Origin: Amoebophrya sp. A120
Taxonomy: Eukaryota > Protista > Dinoflagellata
Assembly (NCBI GenBank): GCA_905178155.1
Contig: CAJINV010000003.1
Location: forward strand, 10,917,367 to 10,981,366
Length of the DNA stretch: 64,000 nt
Direction: 5' to 3'
Position numbers and translations under genes: made by a program. Under the pieces are notes generated by a model. It ran no database searches, had not been told where the DNA came from, and worked only from the letters and a program-made list of their open reading frames with translations. The number at the start of each line of letters is the position of its first letter. The first letter of the stretch is position 1. Of the stretch, positions 47,216 through 56,700 are shown in pieces.

Positions 47216-47702
47216 CACACAGCTGCAGCACACCAGCTGTACCTGCAAGGATGATGATGATGATGATGAACGACGAAGATGAGAGCAGGTTTAGGGTTTT
47301 GATGGAGGACGGGTCGCGCAGCTGCACAGCAGCCACCCTAGTATAGAAATGAACGACGCGGCGGTGGCCCGTTTCAATGACTCCAATTTATCAGTATGAA
47401 CTTTCTTCGGTGCGTGAGGAGGTGGATGATCGAAAGCTGGGCATCGCCAATCCTGGTTTATTGGTTGCCCGTTGGAATCGTGAAGTAGATCATGGATTAA
47501 GCCTATTTTTTTCGAAAGCTGGGAGCAAAACCCTAGTCGCAGGACGGTCCGCCATTGTGCTGCATCGTGAAAGTCTAAGCCTAGTTCGGTTGCTGCCCTC
47601 CATTGGAAAAGATCGTCACTGTGATCCTTGGATCCCCCAAAAGCTCTTTCGATCTGCTGGTGCCAAGTCTCCATTTATTTAGGCACGCCATTATATCAAC
47701 AT

Positions 47703-47825
47703 TTAAACGCCAAACCATACCAGCCCTGTTTAAAGTCATTAAGAAACTTGAAGAGAGTCGACGACCAAGAGAACCCGAACATCAGCAAAAACCCCTTCAG
47801 CAAAGTTGTGAACTTCAGCGTTCAC
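47703..47825. repeat. Split direct repeat A, terminal copy (123 bp)
   Basis: TTAAACGCCAAACC...TTCAGCGTTCAC, identical to 52793-52915. Confidence 0.95.
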
Positions 47826-49390
47826 GACGCCCCCTTGGTCACGCCCGCTATGCCCGGGCTCAGGGAGGAGACATAGCGACAAAGGCCGCGCACGCTCAGC
47901 AAGTCCCCCAGACTCGCCGACCTGTTGGTGATGTCGGCCACCAGCTTCTCGATGTTTGCAACACATTTCGCCACCTTCTCCTGTGGAATGAACACGGACA
48001 GACGAGACCCGTCCGGACTCAGGTCGTAGGCGATCCCCAGGGACACCAAGACCCGCTGCACAGTGTGCGACTCTGATTTTTTGTGTGCAACAGTCCAGCC
48101 GGTCAGTGCTAGATACAAATCCAGAAGGGCTGCACAGGACGCCAGGGCCCGAAGGCGCGCGAACAGCGTCGCGTCGTCTATATAAAATGGACAAGCGAGG
48201 CGCAGCAAAGTCACACAGATCAACATGTGGACTTCACTGACCCCGATGCAATCAAACACAGACCCGAGACTGCCAAACAGGGCAACGTAGGACTTGATCA
48301 CCCGCCATTGCCGTGCGCCGCGGCAGCTCTTCCCCCGGGGCCGTGGTAATGCAACAAGATTCTCGCCAGGCGTGGACACGCAAAGCTGGTAGTAGTAGCC
48401 CTCTAGGTCGCGAGTAGCCAATGCCGCGGTAAAACCGAACTCGTCGCCCGGCTCCCTGCTCTCATCCGTAGCAGCCGCGCGGCACGGGGGAAGCGCGAAA
48501 GGCTTCGCGTGATTCCGCAGAAAAGCCCGCTCACAAAAGGTGTCGGCGATTACATCCCTCTTGGTCTGGAAACAGGACGCAACCGAACCGGACGAACTCG
48601 CGCACAGCTCCGCGACCTCCACGGAGTGGCGGGGCCCCAGGAGGCGAATCCTATCCGCCGGCCGCATGTGTTTGTTGTGCGGTCTGAAATCTACACAGAG
48701 CCGCGTCTTGTTCTTTTGCTCAACTGGGAACCCGATCGCCGGAACGGAAGAAAGAGGCGCGGCGGGATCAAGTTCGACCCAGATGCCGGCAGCGATATTG
48801 GCGTCTGCCTGCCTCTCCATCTCCAGCACCTGTTCCTCTGACGCCCAATGATCGGCCGGCGGACGCCATTTGGCAGGATCCAGCACCGGAGGAGCAGCCC
48901 CCTGCGCATCATCTGCAGTCGGCAAGGCTTCTCTCCAGAACCCGCAGGGGGGAATGTCGCCCCGTGTGGTAACACCAGTCAGGAGCTTCTGCCTGCACGC
49001 CTTCATCTTTAGCTTGTCCGCCGGCGTCACGAACGGGTCCTGAAGCCTGTCCACCGCGAGGTCCAGAAGGAAAAACCACATCTCCAGCTGCTTCCCGTGG
49101 TTTTGATAATTCACCCGCATATGCTCCGGCAGACCCTTCATCGTTATCTCGTTGGCGCCCCGGGTAGCCGAATGCACTGACACGAGCCACCGCGCAAGGA
49201 TTTCGTTTCTCGCTATAGTTTCCCGTGCGGGGGTTCGCTTTAGCTCCTGTACAACGTCTCGCATCATCCAGGGCATGACAGACCGACACCCATAGGACCG
49301 ACGCTGATCAAAGATCTCCCCCGCGTGGATCAGGTCCTTCTTCTCATCGTCGGGGGCGGGTGGGAGGGCCATCTTGTTGCAGTTCGTCAT
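47822..49390 (-). CDS. Reverse transcriptase, no recognisable RNase H
   Basis: RLCVDFRPHN, TRDLEGYYYQL, LFGSLGSV, FYIDDA, GWTVAHKKS, SLGI, then thumb-like IPQEKVAK...LLSVRGLCRYVS. The stop codon lies inside repeat A. Confidence 0.88.
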   Translation of the reverse strand: MTNCNKMALPPAPDDEKKDLIHAGEIFDQRRSYGCRSVMPWMMRDVVQELKRTPARETIARNEILARWLVSVHSATRGANEITMKGLPEHMRVNYQNHGKQLEMWFFLLDLAVDRLQDPFVTPADKLKMKACRQKLLTGVTTRGDIPPCGFWREALPTADDAQGAAPPVLDPAKWRPPADHWASEEQVLEMERQADANIAAGIWVELDPAAPLSSVPAIGFPVEQKNKTRLCVDFRPHNKHMRPADRIRLLGPRHSVEVAELCASSSGSVASCFQTKRDVIADTFCERAFLRNHAKPFALPPCRAAATDESREPGDEFGFTAALATRDLEGYYYQLCVSTPGENLVALPRPRGKSCRGARQWRVIKSYVALFGSLGSVFDCIGVSEVHMLICVTLLRLACPFYIDDATLFARLRALASCAALLDLYLALTGWTVAHKKSESHTVQRVLVSLGIAYDLSPDGSRLSVFIPQEKVAKCVANIEKLVADITNRSASLGDLLSVRGLCRYVSSLSPGIAGVTKGAS

Positions 49391-50199
49391 CTCCCGCTCG
49401 CAGCGAAATAAATAAGGAGATGCGCACACGCTCACGGAGAGATCGCTCACAAGCACCTCAACGAACAGAACACTCACAATCAGTCACACTCACCTCGCGC
49501 TCACATCAATCAGTCAAAAAGAAACACAAGAGTGGCACGGACGTTTGTGCCCGCGTCAGCCTGTTTCACGAATTCACGGAGGTAGGACACACACAATCAC
49601 CGATCTCTCTCTCAAACACAATTATCAGCAGTGCAGGTGGGTTGATAGGCTTCGTAAGGTGTCGACGCAGTAAAACAACATACAGTACTAGATAAAATCG
49701 AATCCCGGCGCTGGCGTAGACCTGAAGGTATGTTTATGGTTTTAGCAAAAAGTCGACACCTCATCCAGCCTATCAACCCACAGGTCAGGATCGATGGCAA
49801 GGAAATCGGGTCAGATTAGTCAGGAGTTAGAGCATCCGCCATCTCAGGCTCAAGATCAAGATCTTCACACTCCAGCTTTTGAATGCAAGAGCAAAAGCAG
49901 GAAGTAGCAGCATCAAATATCCAAGTGGAGCAGCGTTGCTTTGCAACTCAGAGACGGGCCGGCGGAGAGCCAATGCCTGTGCGTGAGTTCTAAGACAGGG
50001 CAGGGAACACACTGATGCGAAACAATAGCAAACTAACTAAACTCTACTAGGCAGAAACTTCTTTTTACAACCAAGGCACCTCTACACACTCAAGCTTCGT
50101 TTTCTGGTTTGTAGTAGTTCCACAATGTGGAACATCCAAACACGCGATAAGTGCGCGGCGGCAGATGTCAACACCTAGGCGATGTAAACAAAAAAAAAC

Positions 50200-51018
50200 C
50201 TAGGACGCAAGCTCTTGCAGCTTATCGTCCGAAATAGCGAACCCCTTCAGGTCGCGAACAAATTTCAGGCGGTCCAATGAGCCGGAGTGAGCAAATTTAC
50301 AGGCTGCACCCCGGGCGCAGGAGCCTTTCATCCAGTCATGGCAAAGCAGAGGGGTACTAAACTTGCGGCCCGCCCCGGTGTCGCCCTCCCCCGGGCGCTT
50401 GCGGCCCGCATGAGCCTGAATCGTGTCGAGCTTCTTGGACATCTTGGACATGGCGGAGTCGAGGATGCTCGTCACCTTGCGCTCGATCTCGGCCGTCATG
50501 CTGTTCTTCTCCTTCTCCAGCTCCGCAGCAGTACGCATCGCAGCCTTCAAAGAGACAGTGAGGGCAACTCTGCACCGGAACTGGTAGGGGTTCGCCTGCC
50601 CCGCCGGGGCGGCCGGCATGCTCTGGACGACGCCCTTGGCCTTCTCAAAGTACATGTCCCACACCTTCTTCTTCGGGAGGCCGACGGCGGACGGGGTCAG
50701 CATGTCGCCGGTGTGGAGCTTCGTGACGTACTGGATCATTGTGTTGGCCTGATCATCATCAAAAAGACCGATGGCGCGCAGAACACCGCAGAACTGCTGC
50801 GGGGCCATCTCCTTGGCCGCCATGTCAATCATGGCCATCATCTGCTCCCCATCGTACCGGCGGCGGTACTTTTGGGTCGTGCCGAAGGTGGGCTTGTACT
50901 CCTCCGGGATGTTCTCGACCGCAGCATTGTGGGCAACCAGTTGCGCCGCGGTGGGTAACTGGACCCCTGCGTCTCCAAGGAGACCCATGAATTGCTGCGC
51001 AGCGTTTGCATTGGCCAT
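50200..51018 (-). CDS. Gag-like protein with coiled coil and C-terminal CCCH zinc finger
   Basis: Likely start MANANAAQQ at 51018. CHDWMKGSCARGAACKFAH is C-x7-C-x5-C-x3-H. Lies inside the element; the gag role is inferred. Confidence 0.7.
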   Translation of the reverse strand: MANANAAQQFMGLLGDAGVQLPTAAQLVAHNAAVENIPEEYKPTFGTTQKYRRRYDGEQMMAMIDMAAKEMAPQQFCGVLRAIGLFDDDQANTMIQYVTKLHTGDMLTPSAVGLPKKKVWDMYFEKAKGVVQSMPAAPAGQANPYQFRCRVALTVSLKAAMRTAAELEKEKNSMTAEIERKVTSILDSAMSKMSKKLDTIQAHAGRKRPGEGDTGAGRKFSTPLLCHDWMKGSCARGAACKFAHSGSLDRLKFVRDLKGFAISDDKLQELAS

Positions 51019-51458
51019 TTTGTCGAGTTTGTTGTTCTGAAGCGAGTGTGTATAAAGGTTCAAACGGTTATCAAGTTCCCCTGCAGGCAAGACAGATACA
51101 GAGATAGAAGGGCCACCAAAGAAAGCGAAGCACTCACTTCGTGCCCCCACCGGATCTTGCGTCGTCGACTCTCACGAATGCACTCAATCAGCACTCACGT
51201 CACGCAGTCACCACTCACATCACGATATTTCGATTTGTACGACCAGAGCGAGGCGATAGAAAAACTTGAGAACGGGAGCGACTGAAGATCACGGGCATCA
51301 TGTACAGCAGGCTTAATAGCATAAATTTTCTTCGGAACCTTATTGGGTCTTCGTTCCGATGGGGAGCGGATCCGGGGCAACATTTATGATTTATCATCAG
51401 CAAGATTCAGGAGCGTCAATCAGCATTTTGCTTACTTACTTCAAAAACATCAATGGGA

Positions 51459-52673
51459 TTACTTGATCACATTCAGCGGGGCAGAGAGCGGCCAACGGAT
51501 TGCCGTCATCTCCGTGCAATTCACGGAGCAACCGTCGAGATAGGCCGCCATTGTCTGGAACTGCTTCCAGCGGCCCAGCTTCTTGATCGACAAATGGTCC
51601 AGGCCGCCCTGACTCACCGCCTGGGCCCCACCAATGCGGAAGCTGTACAGGCCCCACTCACTTCGAGTCGTGTTGACCTTCTTGTTCGGGATCTTGCACC
51701 GCTCCAGGATGCTTGCAAAACAGCGGCGGTGGAGCGTCATGGGCTGTTGACTCCAGGCGGCCCAGGCCGCGTCCGAAACACAGTGCGCCGCGCAGAGCTT
51801 CCGCGACAAGCCGGCAGTGACAGACAAGTCACAGGAACACCGGAACGACGCATCAAAGCCGCGACCCCCCTGGTCGACCTTCGACTTCGACAAGTGATAT
51901 CGCGCATCGCCCGAAGGCGTTATCGTGCGCGAGAGGTCTCGCAGCTCGTCCGGGCGGGACAACAACAGCCAAGCCGAAACCGCAAACCCCAACCACTCCG
52001 CGCAGGAAAACTGTTGCCCCTTATGCTCAACCTTTGTATCATCGGCGGCGGTAATCACGTCAACAGCGGCCCAGAAGCTACAAAGAACGGGCTTCTCCTG
52101 GCTTGGGCTCGCGTCCAGCTGTAGAATTTTGAAACACCGGGCGTACTCCGCCTGCAAGGTGGCCGACCAGGACACCTTGCCATCTACACTCGCCTTGATG
52201 TTGGCAAGGTATATCGCCGCACTATTATCGATGCCGCTGCACTTGTGCAAAACTGCGGCAATGAGCCGAAGCTTTTCTTCGTCGAGCGGGGCCCCGACTT
52301 CCCAGCCCATCGCACTGCAGATCGGGCTGACGTATTTGCTCACCACGAAACCCTGCGCCGCTTTCGTCCTGGAGGCGTACTGCCGACCCGCGAAATCTTG
52401 CACAAGCTTCTCGCGGAAGGCTTTGTTCTGTAGCTTCTCAATGATCTGCCCAAGTGGCAGTTTGCCACCCTCGTCGGCGGCCGCAGCAGCCGCTTGCGTA
52501 TCCTTCGATCTGTCGAACCTCCGTTTCTTGGCCGCGGGGGGAGGGGCGGTCGGGGACCTATCTTTCTTCTCGTCGGCTGGGGGTTTGTTACTAGCTACTG
52601 CCGCACTACTGCTGCTAACGCCGGTCGAGGCGTAAAGCATGGCCCCGTACATCGCAGCCTCTTCAATGTCCAT
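51459..52673 (-). CDS. Tyrosine recombinase of the retrotransposon
   Basis: LLLSRPDEL (catalytic R), SKSKVDQGGRG (K), YSFRIGGA (HxxR position), LGRWKQFQTMAAYL (W and catalytic Y), the pattern of DIRS-order YRs. Confidence 0.9.
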   Translation of the reverse strand: MDIEEAAMYGAMLYASTGVSSSSAAVASNKPPADEKKDRSPTAPPPAAKKRRFDRSKDTQAAAAAADEGGKLPLGQIIEKLQNKAFREKLVQDFAGRQYASRTKAAQGFVVSKYVSPICSAMGWEVGAPLDEEKLRLIAAVLHKCSGIDNSAAIYLANIKASVDGKVSWSATLQAEYARCFKILQLDASPSQEKPVLCSFWAAVDVITAADDTKVEHKGQQFSCAEWLGFAVSAWLLLSRPDELRDLSRTITPSGDARYHLSKSKVDQGGRGFDASFRCSCDLSVTAGLSRKLCAAHCVSDAAWAAWSQQPMTLHRRCFASILERCKIPNKKVNTTRSEWGLYSFRIGGAQAVSQGGLDHLSIKKLGRWKQFQTMAAYLDGCSVNCTEMTAIRWPLSAPLNVIK

Positions 52674-52691
52674 CTTGGGTGGGCGGGCGGG

Positions 52692-52915
52692 ACAAAAAAT
52701 TCACGACCTACAAAACGGTGTAGGATCACCTCACTGCATGTACCAGAGGACCCTTGCCGGTCGTGCGATCTCTTACAAGTTTCATAATTTCATTAAACGC
52801 CAAACCATACCAGCCCTGTTTAAAGTCATTAAGAAACTTGAAGAGAGTCGACGACCAAGAGAACCCGAACATCAGCAAAAACCCCTTCAGCAAAGTTGTG
52901 AACTTCAGCGTTCAC
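52692..52915. repeat. Internal B+A junction copy of the split direct repeats
   Basis: B (52692-52793) abuts A (52793-52915), sharing one T, so it reproduces the join of the two element ends. Confidence 0.95.
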
Positions 52916-53416
52916 ATTTCTCAAATATTTCTTTCAATTCACTGGCTGTGACCTCGTACTTTGGCGTGGTGGTGCGCGCGAGCAAATCAACGCAAATCTT
53001 CTGAATCAAGTGCAAAACCTGAAGGCCGACAAAAACGAGCCTTTCAGGTCATCACGCTGAGGCTCCTGTTGTGACAGTACAAAGGCAGACCCGGGAGGAG
53101 CTATCTCAGCATCTGTGGATCGGTCAGCCCAACACAAGGCTGGGCCGACGTCACTCTACAACGAGCTCCATGCCCGGATCTGCGCGAAAATGCGCTGCGA
53201 GGCACACTTCCTCCACAAGACCCCCAAAAGGTAGCGAAGCAACGACTGAGCCGAAGCAACGCAAAAAGCTGCACGCGCCTCACCTCGCATCACACTCTTG
53301 CGCTCAGTCACGCGAACATCATCGAACTTCAACGAATCAGACTACGGAAGCTGGGGGTGGCGTGTCGTGCTTCCTTGGACACTCTCCTCCTGAACCACAT
53401 GCATCACGTCACGCCC

Positions 53417-53518
53417 ACAAAAAATTCACGACCTACAAAACGGTGTAGGATCACCTCACTGCATGTACCAGAGGACCCTTGCCGGTCGTGCGATCTCTTA
53501 CAAGTTTCATAATTTCAT
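53417..53518. repeat. Split direct repeat B, terminal copy (102 bp)
   Basis: ACAAAAAATTCACG...CATAATTTCAT, identical to 52692-52793. Confidence 0.95.
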
Positions 53519-53776
53519 AAATCATAGTGCCCTGAGGATCAGCGTTGTATTCTGATTCCGGTCGTTGTCATCGTCTATGATACCGCGATTTGTATTTTTT
53601 CTCCTTGTGGGGACTTCGTGTTTGCGTGGTACACCCAGATCGTGATTATTTCTACGAGTTCCTGCTGTGCAAGTGCAGCTTGCTGCGTAGATTGAGATTT
53701 TATGTGATGTTTTTGTTGTTGAACCTTTGGAACAATGTTGACAAGAATATAAGGGCGGGTGAGTGTTGATTCGACC

Positions 53777-56700
53777 ATGGAAGCGCCGGCCGCAAGCTTT
53801 GCTCCTGAGTCCGGGACGCGGTCTTCTCCCGAGGAAGTACAACAACCTCAAGAGGACAGAGCCGCAGCGTCTTCGCGATCGCAATGTAGTGGTGGATGGT
53901 TCTCCACCACAAAAAGCGCGCTCCATCAGATATTTCTGATGGATAATCTGAATGTGTATTCTGTGTTGAGCCTCGAGGCATGGTGCAACGCCGTCAAGGA
54001 CGGGCTTTGGATGCGACTCATGTCCGTCTACGTCTTGGTTCTCTTCGCCGGCGACCCCCGCAACGCCGGCGTCGTCCTCATGGTAAGCGGGTTGACCCGC
54101 GCCTTGTCGGGCGTGGTTACCGGCACACTGCTTGTGCCCGCCTCCAGTGCCGACGTGCTGCTGCAGGCGGCCGGCTGGCTTGGCATTTTGGGATTGCTGG
54201 CGAACACGTTCACATTCTGGACCGCCCGAGCCGCAATTTGCAATCCTCAGACAGGAGTCTTCTCGAACTTGTTCAGCAGCATTATTTTTTTGGCGCGTGA
54301 AGATGAAAACGTGGAAGAAGATCTTCCTCGTGGCCCCGCTCTGACATGGATCGGTGACGTTGGGACCAGAGGACAGACATTGCTTCATTCTCCGGAGAAC
54401 GCTGCGAAAGCAGTGAACGCTTTTGATGCCGGGGGTGCGTTTTTACGGAGTGACGTAGGTGAGACCTACCATATCCACAGTAACAAATTTCCCGTACACG
54501 TAGAATGTGAATGAATGCGGTTTCTGCAGCATGACTACAAGCTTTTCGTCCTGCAGTGGTCATATAAAGCATGACAGGTGCGTGGCGTTCTTTAAGTATG
54601 GCGAAATTTGTGCTGGTTTTGGTACTTACGTGAGTTGCAGCTGCAGGGAATTTGTATTTTTGCATATGGATATGCCATCAAGCCGAGGAGTTTCGCGACG
54701 ACGAGAAGCAGCGCATGCTGTTTCTCAAGGTTTTGGCAGTCAACTTCATTTGGGGTCTGTTCACTGGCATCTCAAATGCCAGTGGAGAGGTGGCATGGGC
54801 GCGTTCAGTGGTGTCCGAGAAGCGCGTCGATGCGAATCTGGGTCGGCAAATGCTGAACAAAGCTACCACCGCCTGCGGGCCCTTGCTCGGCATTTTGTTT
54901 GTGATGTCTCTCCAGCACAACGACAAGAACCAGGTTCAGTTTGCAAGCAGAAGTGCCGCGGACACGACAGTAGAACATGCTCAGACCACTCCTGGCTACA
55001 CCCCGCGAGGAGGAGCTCCAAGGGCCTCCGAATCCGACATGACGTTCTTTGACCGCAGTTCTGCGCTCAACATACTGAATGCGCCGCCAACCACTTCCGG
55101 TTCTGACGTGAGGCCACTTGAGCGCAGTTCAACATCAACTTTGGACACGCGGACGAAGCTGCGCGAGCTTCGGGACGCGGGCTGGTCGCTCGAGATGCTG
55201 AACCACGTGATGCTCCTCGGCACGCTGCTGACCGTGGTTCCGGTTGTGACCTGTTTCTTTATGCATTGCAAATATGTCTGGGTCTGGAAGACAGTAACTT
55301 GTGATGCTAAATCTGCATCATGCTAAAATCTATCTGTGTTGCATAAGTGCCAAAAGCTTTCCACTTTCGACCAAGTTGGGAACGGATTTCTCATGCAGGA
55401 CAGGCATGACAGAGACCTCGCAGAGTTTGTCATGCTAGGCCCCGCATTCCAGACCTCATGGGTCATGGAAAATCTGCATGACAAGTTGCATTCTTCCAGA
55501 CCCAGACATATTTGCATTTAATATTCTTCTTTGATCAGCGATTCGAGATGCGTCAGAAAATTCTACTGCGCGAGATTCGAAAGCTGGTTTTCCTCTATGG
55601 AAGCGTCAGGTTTGAAATCGTCAAAGTTGAAATAGTTTGCCATGCATAAAATGCAGCCCTCAAAGTGCCTGTCTTGCAGAGTAGGCAAGTGAGGCAGATT
55701 GTAAGCCTTTTGAGGGATAGAAACTGAGCTGCTAAAGTAGCATGACAAAAGGCGTCTTTCTTACCCAAACAGCATGACAAACTGGATTTCGGCTCTACCC
55801 AAATTTGTCATGCGCTACTTGGAAACTGGGTCACGACTTTCATCCATTCTATGCATTACAAGTTATTTCAACTTTGTCGATTTCAATCCTGACACATCCA
55901 TATCCTCGATCCCGAAGTTGTCCCTGTCGCAGCAGAGGGAGTTAGCGACGGTGCCTACAACTTGGCACCACCTCCTCTAGGTCCGCCGCCGACGGGAAAT
56001 ATTAAGGCAGATGAAAGAAAAAATGAAGGTAAGAGGGAGAAGATGAAGATGAATCAGCCTTACAGGAGAACCTCCTCTGCTGCCGGAGGGGTCGGAGTCC
56101 GTGTTGAGGGGTTGGGGGATGAGAAAGTAGGCTCAGGCTTTCAACACCATCATCTCGATCCAGCTGCAAGTGCCCGAGCGCTGTCGACATCAATGGGCAC
56201 ATCAATCATGGCCAAGAAGCTGCGACCCAGGCCCAGCGGCATCCAGCTTGGCGATTTCTGCCACAAGGTTGAACTCTATTGCGACAGGCTGACAAAGTAC
56301 AGCTTTGTCGCTGCCCGTCCCGGCTTTGTTCGCCTCAGCTACCCTATCCGGCCCTCTTCGCGGTACGCCAGTCTGTCGGTTTTGAAGAAAACGACTTTGG
56401 AGGAAACGGATCTGCTGCTTGGAAAATCCTACGACGCGACAATTAACTTAGCGCCATTATTCTTTGATGAAAATGGCACGTCACTTCTGTCGAATAAGCA
56501 GCGCTCTCTTATGAACCACTTCTACAACCTGCACACACACCAGGAGCTGCTTGGGAATAAGGAACATGCTATGGGAGATGAAAGAGGACCTCCGCCAGTG
56601 GGAGGACGACCAGGTGAACATGAGACCGCCGCCAGCAACGCAAGCAGGAGGACAGATGATGATGACAATAAAGGCAGCTCTGGTTGTGCTGATCGTTGGA

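Follow-up and report, generated by a model that had tools for sequence, protein, structure and literature searches.

An internally deleted, recombinase-first tyrosine-recombinase retrotransposon and its relatives in Amoebophrya sp. A120

A 64,000-nucleotide stretch of the Amoebophrya sp. A120 genome (assembly GCA_905178155.1, contig CAJINV010000003.1, positions 10,917,367 to 10,981,366 of the forward strand), referred to here as the window, carries on its minus strand a retrotransposon that encodes a tyrosine recombinase (YR), a CCCH zinc-finger protein and a reverse transcriptase (RT), in that order, together with two pairs of split direct repeats. The element is best filed within the DIRS order, and its most satisfactory explanation, which we consider probable, is that it is an internally deleted member of a recombinase-first lineage of that order with splint-type replication, in which an internal repeat junction aligns the ends of the cDNA. 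The window element is a single-copy, internally deleted 5.8-kb member of a family of approximately 6.9 kb, and all three of its open reading frames (ORFs) are under purifying selection. Both the recombinase-first order and the placement of the internal junction upstream of the genes are features of the lineage and not an accident of the window copy.

Anatomy and coding capacity of the window element

Comparison of the window with itself identifies two pairs of direct repeats. The two copies of repeat A (47703-47825 and 52793-52915) are identical at 123/123 nt, and the two copies of repeat B (52692-52796 and 53417-53521), each of 105 nt, are 99% identical, with one difference located at the junction end. 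Between the repeats are three open, non-overlapping minus-strand ORFs (404, 316 and 551 aa), and the order in the coding direction is B'-501 nt-A'B'-YR-CCCH-RT-A'. Here we name the repeats in the coding direction, with the copies of B' designated X1 and X2, and those of A' forming the 3' part of Y1 and a remnant of Y2 (Table 1). With X1 and Y2 included, the element is 5819 nt long (C3:10965069-10970887). The junction of flank and X1 is CACTATGATTTA/TGAAATT (a slash marks the boundary), without a target-site duplication (TSD), and the last 24 nt of Y2 (47703-47726) hold a conserved terminal motif, GGGCTGGTATGGTTTGGCGTTTAA. Neither inverted terminal repeats nor an ICR (internal complementary region) like that of DIRS-1 is present, the sole inverted repeat within the element being a 30-nt pair at 49637-49781.

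Each of the three ORFs was compared with domain and structure databases. Pfam searches with the YR, RT/RNase H (RT/RH) and extra ORFs of eight families return matches for the CCCH protein only; the middle ORF of the window element matches zf-CCCH with E = 5.8e-8, which passes the curated threshold. The motifs LRPDE, SKxDQ, (H/Y)SxRIGG, GRW and Y are common to nine related first ORFs and in the alignment make up an R..K..(H/Y)xxR..W..Y signature, and the YR profile matches Cre residues 277-328, containing H289, R292, W315 and Y324, with E = 1e-3. The AlphaFold model of the window YR has a mean pLDDT of 57.6, and every one of its top Foldseek matches is a tyrosine recombinase (Cre, Tre, XerH, TelA, Flp or lambda Int), with probabilities up to 0.99, a best E of 6e-3 and TM scores of approximately 0.3.

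Eight related last ORFs share FPV..R.C.D.R..N, D..YYYQ, FGS, YIDD and LG, followed in the relatives by RNase H motifs, and a 60-sequence alignment shows no variation at the RT aspartates or at D, E, D and D of RNase H. An earlier profile of eight sequences gave a marginal match to HIV-2 RT as its only match in the PDB; the 60-sequence profile matches HIV-2 RT (1.1e-6), group II intron RT (7e-6) and foamy-virus RT (1e-4). One RT homologue, P0129 of Amoebophrya AT5.2, passes Pfam RVT_1.

The CCCH protein has its likely start at a conserved Met at 51018, and a fold search with it returned neither a capsid nor another significant match; the term 'gag-like' is thus applied by analogy, from the position of the ORF and its nucleic-acid-binding motif. 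Between the window and a sister copy, C35, dN/dS is 0.084 for YR, 0.041 for CCCH and 0.086 for RT, and values of 0.04-0.09 in all three ORFs indicate real genes that evolved under constraint. The CCCH ORF also has a dS of 0.65 (window 50200-51150 compared with L042:5651-6508 of the C35 copy) versus 1.4-1.5 for YR and RT, which suggests recombination between subfamilies.

These features had largely been anticipated in an earlier reading of the window from its letters and ORF translations (the sequence-only reading). It had placed the split repeats at exactly the positions given above, recognized three uninterrupted and non-overlapping minus-strand ORFs, and written the order as B'-500 nt-A'B'-YR-CCCH-RT-A', all of which is reproduced here. 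Its identification of the first ORF is borne out by the Cre-region profile, the fold matches and the conserved catalytic motifs, and that of the last by the conserved motifs, the 60-sequence profile and the RVT_1 homologue. Two of its descriptions hold in part. The middle ORF does encode a CCCH finger, but the gag role assigned to it finds no match in the fold search; and the 500-nt spacer is composite, with approximately 213 nt (53204-53416) forming a true leader but the other 288 nt belonging to the 5' part of Y1. The latter assignment comes from an alignment of window 53203-52793 with C35:125621-126035, a segment lying directly 3' of the C35 RT/RH stop codon and running into Y2.

The window copy is defective. 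The first codon inside A' terminates its RT ORF, which ends GVTKGAS, whereas all of the relatives continue for about 220-250 aa past GVTKGAS, with the RNase H motifs DAS..E..HxDN..N.AD. DNA homology to C35 ends at window 47833 and restarts only inside A, and the approximately 1.15 kb that is missing by comparison with C35 and a second sister copy, C29, comprises the RNase H domain, the 3' untranslated region (UTR) and the 5' part of Y2. The C29 copy, X1 and Y2 included, is 6929 nt long, versus the 5819 nt in the window. C35 and C29 are 75-88% identical to the window copy, which is the sole member of its subfamily in the assembly; the sequence of both sister copies is partly N, and their 5' ends are seen in part only.

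With RNase H and the 5' part of Y2 lost, the window copy is unable to replicate on its own. The sequence-only reading had regarded it as recently active, a description that does not suit it as an autonomous element, given that it has no RNase H and no other member of its subfamily is present. We lean towards a deletion after rather than before insertion, because the assembly contains no autonomous partner of the window subfamily. The C35 copy has a different lesion: in its YR (L042:3847-5142) the catalytic Arg of (H/Y)xxR is replaced by His (YSFHIGG, compared with YSFRIGG in the window copy), and this sister copy, with RT/RH intact, probably has a dead recombinase. Judged by these residues and ORFs, neither the window nor the C35 copy looks fully competent.

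Table 1. Features of the window element, listed in the coding direction (window coordinates).
Feature	Position	Strand	Remarks
X1 (= B')	53417..53521	-	5'-terminal split repeat; 99% identity with 52692-52796; left element boundary 53521
Unique leader, true spacer, ~213 nt	53204..53416	-	~82% identity to the stretch after b1 in the C29 copy; no counterpart in C35 Y2
5' part of the long Y1 repeat, 288 nt	52916..53203	-	Y2 partner deleted; matches C35
3' part of Y1 (= A')	52793..52915	-	123/123 with 47703-47825
X2	52692..52796	-	With Y1 makes the internal Y-X junction ..GGCGTTTAA/TGAAATTATG.., equal to two element ends joined
Tyrosine recombinase ORF, 404 aa	51459..52673	-	Cre-region profile match, fold matches, catalytic motifs; ATG 18 nt after X2
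CCCH zinc-finger protein ORF, 316 aa	50200..51150	-	Helical, finger C-terminal; Pfam zf-CCCH
RT ORF, 551 aa, truncated	47822..49477	-	Fingers, palm, thumb and connection, without RNase H; alignment with relatives
Deletion junction	47826..47835	-	~1.15 kb of C35/C29 sequence absent
Y2 remnant (= A')	47703..47825	-	3'-terminal repeat; right element boundary 47703; terminal motif in 47703-47726

Just to the right of the element, at window 55260-55902, are two inverted-repeat pairs of approximately 58 nt that are 80-84% complementary.

Gene order and repeat plan in related families

The genome (115,520,608 bases in 401 contigs) was searched with the window RT and YR proteins. Wherever a locus yielded both genes, YR is on the same strand as RT and upstream of it; there are ten such loci (window, C35, C15, C3:8.59 Mb, C6, C90/C91, C7, C5, C10 and C16), representing at least seven diverged families whose RTs are as little as 25-35% identical. 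A CCCH ORF is situated between YR and RT in all of the families, and the order YR-CCCH-RT is also present in two predicted public proteins, one of them from Amoebophrya AT5.2.

The repeat plan X1-(leader)-Y1X2-ORFs-Y2 is shared by four families: window/C35/C29, C15, C3:8.59 Mb and C7. In the C15 family, X is 111 nt, the leader 172 nt and Y 476 nt, and both repeat pairs are 100% identical; in the C7 family, X is 71 nt (95.8% identical), the leader 440 nt and Y 300 nt (100%); and in the C3:8.59 Mb family, X is 95 nt (100%), there is no leader, and Y is 681 nt (99.6%) and overlaps the end of the RT ORF. For each of the four, the internal Y1-X2 junction corresponds to the end of Y2 joined to the start of X1, with no TSD. 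The leader of the window copy is also present in the C29 copy. We considered the possibility that all spacers are degenerate Y sequence; this is true for 288 nt of the window spacer but is ruled out by the 172-nt leader of C15, which is unrelated to Y.

At C3:10447361-10448130 lies a solo X-leader-Y unit that belongs to the C15 family (92% identity) and is the counterpart of a solo long terminal repeat (LTR) or solo AB repeat. Within the C7 leader, a unit of approximately 70 nt (L049:1653-1726) recurs at more than 15 places in the genome with 77-83% identity and is probably a small nested repeat or introner.

The Y repeats end in a common motif. The last ~25 nt read GGGCTGG..TGGTTTGG(C/T)..TAA, and this is kept in the window/C35, C15/C3:8.59 Mb and C6 families even though identity among their RTs is no more than 35-38%; at the Y-X junction the conserved sequence is GGGCTGG..TGGTTTGGCGT..TAA. 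The sites are window 47703-47726 and 52793-52816, L043:9505-9529, the C3:8.59 Mb copy (L044/L031) and the end of the C6 element. The motif is a candidate recombinase or priming site. At the other end of the element, five families have GG(C/T)AAGG at a distance of ~40-55 nt from the 5' end of X; it resembles a GT/GC splice donor.

The sequence-only reading had raised the possibility that the order and layout define a lineage, and the comparison of gene order among other genomic copies agrees with this: YR precedes RT at ten of ten loci, and four families share the repeat plan. An independent set of short-read contigs, labelled as the same organism, covers all unique segments of the window element at single-copy depth. 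The loose end at 47702 was considered as a possible third insertion, and is explained by C35 and C29 sharing both the first 34 nt of A and that flank.

Other relatives have different layouts. The C6 family element (C6:2867709-2877173; 9465 nt) encodes a YR of 623 aa, a CCCH protein of 316 aa and an RT/RH of 815 aa. Contigs C90 and C91 are circularly permuted versions of the C6-family element with identical 95-nt contig ends, and their head-to-tail junction, ..GGTCTATAA/TGGTTAG.., is present as DNA; it fits what is expected of tandem copies or of a circular DNA form. A further related family has the opposite order, with RT/RH followed by a 360-aa YR (C3:2339090-2342932, L041; and C1:12.06 Mb, L040), and a 118-nt repeat between its genes recurs, 100% identical, 5.7 kb upstream at C3:2334672-2334789. 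Nematode PAT elements likewise have an internal repeat between pol and YR.

The RT/RH superfamily has at least 61 matches in the genome, and YR only 16 with the profile used. The RT/RH profile matches 2227 public proteins at E <= 1e-3, and the thirty homologues whose source was looked up come mostly from environmental assemblies, with Amoebophrya sp. AT5.2 as the sole named source. A metagenome scan with the RT alignment gave no match; a scan with P0056 identified one contig (L051) with a 701-aa ORF upstream of RT that has a weak CCCH match. There is no YR in the 5.4 kb of L051, which ends inside RT and so gives no information on gene order. The window family belongs to a lineage spread over several Amoebophrya genomes and environmental sequence data.

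Replication and alternative explanations

Read in the coding direction, the complete plan of the lineage is X1-(leader)-Y1 X2-YR-CCCH protein-RT/RNase H-Y2, with neither a methyltransferase nor a TSD. From the anatomy described above we infer the RNA ends, the circle and the crossover site as follows. An RNA spanning X1 to Y2 would be reverse-transcribed; the ends of the cDNA would then be aligned on the internal Y1-X2 junction, whose sequence is that of the joined ends, and closed into a circle; and the recombinase would integrate the circle by crossover at the new Y-X junction, within a short TA-rich core (TTTAA here). This would be the Goodwin-Poulter model for Ngaro and PAT elements, as it is summarized in PMC6681497 and PMC7192593, with the splint 5' of the genes and not 3'. 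The leader is inherited between diverged copies and into the solo X-leader-Y unit, which favours an RNA start at X1 over one at Y1.

The sequence-only reading had described the repeats as a mirror image of the usual layout, and had proposed that the ends are regenerated by a different route. The internal junction is indeed upstream of the ORFs, but A..BA..B read on the opposite strand is again A..BA..B, the standard topology of split direct repeats. Since this topology is unchanged, and the difference is confined to where the junction lies with respect to the ORFs, the ends can be regenerated without any new chemistry, and the splint model applies as it stands. A circle with two junction units would give the present layout if opened at the downstream unit and the Ngaro layout if opened at the upstream one; the integrated form is a circular permutation of the Ngaro layout.

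Several observations weigh against the splint explanation. The C6 family shares the genes and the terminal motif yet lacks split repeats, so a splint cannot be the sole route in the lineage. The deeper families C7 and C5 carry an extra ORF upstream of YR, the gag role of the CCCH protein is without structural support from the fold search, and neither RNA ends nor a circle junction nor an empty site was seen for the window element, on which two raw RNA runs (X6 and X7) placed no reads and contigs guessed to be RNA are sparse. Among the contigs guessed to be RNA, run X3 lists seven of low depth, all non-coding and mostly upstream of ORF starts, at window 49502-49879, 51116-51355, 52764-52985 and 53243-53611; none of those listed is inside an ORF. 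This non-coding bias could be a filter effect or reflect separate 5' UTRs.

Three other explanations were weighed. The best placed is that the lineage is the Amoebophrya branch of the DIRS-like elements of Symbiodinium (SymbioDIRS), with nothing new at the family level, which we see as a plausible reading although not a probable one. Symbiodinium DIRS elements have an RT too divergent for Pfam, two structures in which the order of the integrase and Pol ORFs is shuffled, and split repeats of the A/B type (de Mendoza et al. 2018, PMC5890265), and the clusters nearest to the RT/RH in a protein-atlas search include an alveolate (Perkinsozoa). Their published plan is, however, A-coding-B-A-B, with the junction downstream (PMC5890265), and the description on which the comparison is based includes no CCCH ORF and does not place a recombinase in the first ORF.

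Replication could instead be LTR-like, with the [Y1 X2] unit acting as promoter, an RNA running from Y1 to Y2, and Y providing the terminal redundancy; the recombinase would open, at Y-X, a circle with one or two [YX] units, leaving X1 as a by-product of the cut. We consider this unlikely. It would account for the intact junction unit directly upstream of the first ORF in all of the families, and also for the repeat-free C6 copy (X-ORFs-Y, from a one-unit circle) and the head-to-tail junction of C90. However, the inherited leader between X1 and Y1, seen in diverged copies and in the solo unit, would be absent from an RNA starting in Y1, and the window and C15 copies have Y1 and Y2 with unlike 5' parts, whereas LTR-like copying would equalise them. 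A rearranged or misassembled Ngaro/PAT-like element, with a true form of gag-RT/RH-YR and a downstream junction, is highly improbable and largely refuted: the assembly does hold only one copy of the exact sequence, and short-read unitigs break at the repeats and give no independent bridging, but the same gene order recurs at every locus holding both genes and in the Amoebophrya AT5.2 protein, the same repeat plan recurs in four diverged families on different contigs, and the unique segments are all at single-copy depth in the independent contig set.

With splint-type replication retained as the preferred explanation, the question arises of what is new in the lineage. In the literature searched, no element is described with the recombinase first and CCCH second, none with its internal junction upstream of every gene, and no YR retrotransposon in Amoebophrya, whose genome paper reports mostly unclassified repeats together with LTR and non-LTR elements (PMC7789003). 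Three integrated or DNA forms are seen: with the junction upstream, with no junction (the C6 family), and with the head-to-tail junction as DNA (C90/C91). We tentatively propose, as a possibility that we rate below an even chance, a distinct and undescribed superfamily-level clade of YR retrotransposons in Syndiniales and marine relatives, with the integrated forms being alternative openings of one circle. The marks of the proposed clade would be the recombinase-first order, a CCCH protein between YR and RT, an RT/RH outside Pfam models, and a conserved terminal recombination motif.

Replication of YR retrotransposons is still mostly a model, and a DIRS-1 circular junction has so far not been amplified (PMC7192593). 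If the proposal of a separate clade is true, the resolution of circles in DIRS-order elements becomes directly testable. The sister families of one genome, comprising the three forms and the family with a repeat between RT/RH and YR, provide a natural series for asking which parts of the repeats are needed and where the recombinase cuts. They also point to a large RT/RH superfamily missed by standard domain models, with its 61 or more genome matches and 2227 public homologues, and such elements could contribute to the unclassified repeats of Amoebophrya.

Comparison with known elements

The element combines the features by which the DIRS order is recognized, namely RT/RNase H and YR encoded together with no DDE integrase, and ends repeated internally. 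YR and RT sit together in a single unit bounded by repeats; RNase H, deleted in the window, is found in all of the sister copies; and in the window, C15, C7 and C3:8.59 Mb families the ends are repeated side by side internally without a TSD. PAT, Kangaroo and DIRS-1 are likewise YR retrotransposons, and in DIRS-1 the YR ORF is also ahead of RT/RH; all three differ in having a methyltransferase domain. No methyltransferase follows RNase H in the eight-member alignment, in which the intact RT/RH ORFs end soon after the last RNase H motif, and the Pfam scan of the family ORFs gave no methyltransferase match. DIRS-1 differs further in its inverted terminal repeats and ICR, and Kangaroo in its inverted YR, none of which is found in the window element. 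PAT forms are known to differ in where their internal repeat lies (PMC4157794).

Ngaro elements (DrNgaro1 and the Cafeteria Ngaros) share with the Amoebophrya families YR and RT/RH, the lack of a methyltransferase and of TSDs, and the occurrence of solo units (PMC8547959), as well as split direct repeats with an internal junction equal to the joined ends. They have the order gag-RT/RH-YR, whereas YR is the first ORF and RT the last in the window element, and their plan is A1-ORFs-B1A2B2, whereas the junction is upstream of all ORFs in the four families that share the repeat plan. The Cafeteria Ngaros differ in addition from the Amoebophrya families in that the RT and YR of the latter are invisible to Pfam.

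The order of YR before RT is itself already known, both in the VIPER and TATE elements of kinetoplastids (PMC6681497) and among the shuffled orders in Symbiodinium. VIPER and TATE resemble the Amoebophrya families in that YR and RT/RH are encoded by separate ORFs with YR upstream, a methyltransferase is absent, the direct repeats are split, and the host uses spliced-leader trans-splicing (PMC6681497). Their order is gag-YR-RT/RH, VIPER having a CCHC gag-like ORF first, A1 at the 5' end and B1A2B2 at the 3' end. By contrast, the window family has YR first, with no ORF before it (the ATG is 18 nt from X2), the CCCH protein between YR and RT, and the junction upstream, a plan different from that of VIPER/TATE; the C7 and C5 families do have an ORF1 ahead of YR.

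SymbioDIRS of the Symbiodiniaceae share a dinoflagellate host, a Pfam-divergent RT, the occurrence of both YR/Pol orders, and A/B split repeats (de Mendoza et al. 2018). Compared by description, they differ in having a DNMT3 domain and the plan A-coding-B-A-B, neither DNMT nor another methyltransferase being found here. The Amoebophrya element may be the Syndiniales branch of dinoflagellate DIRS-like elements.

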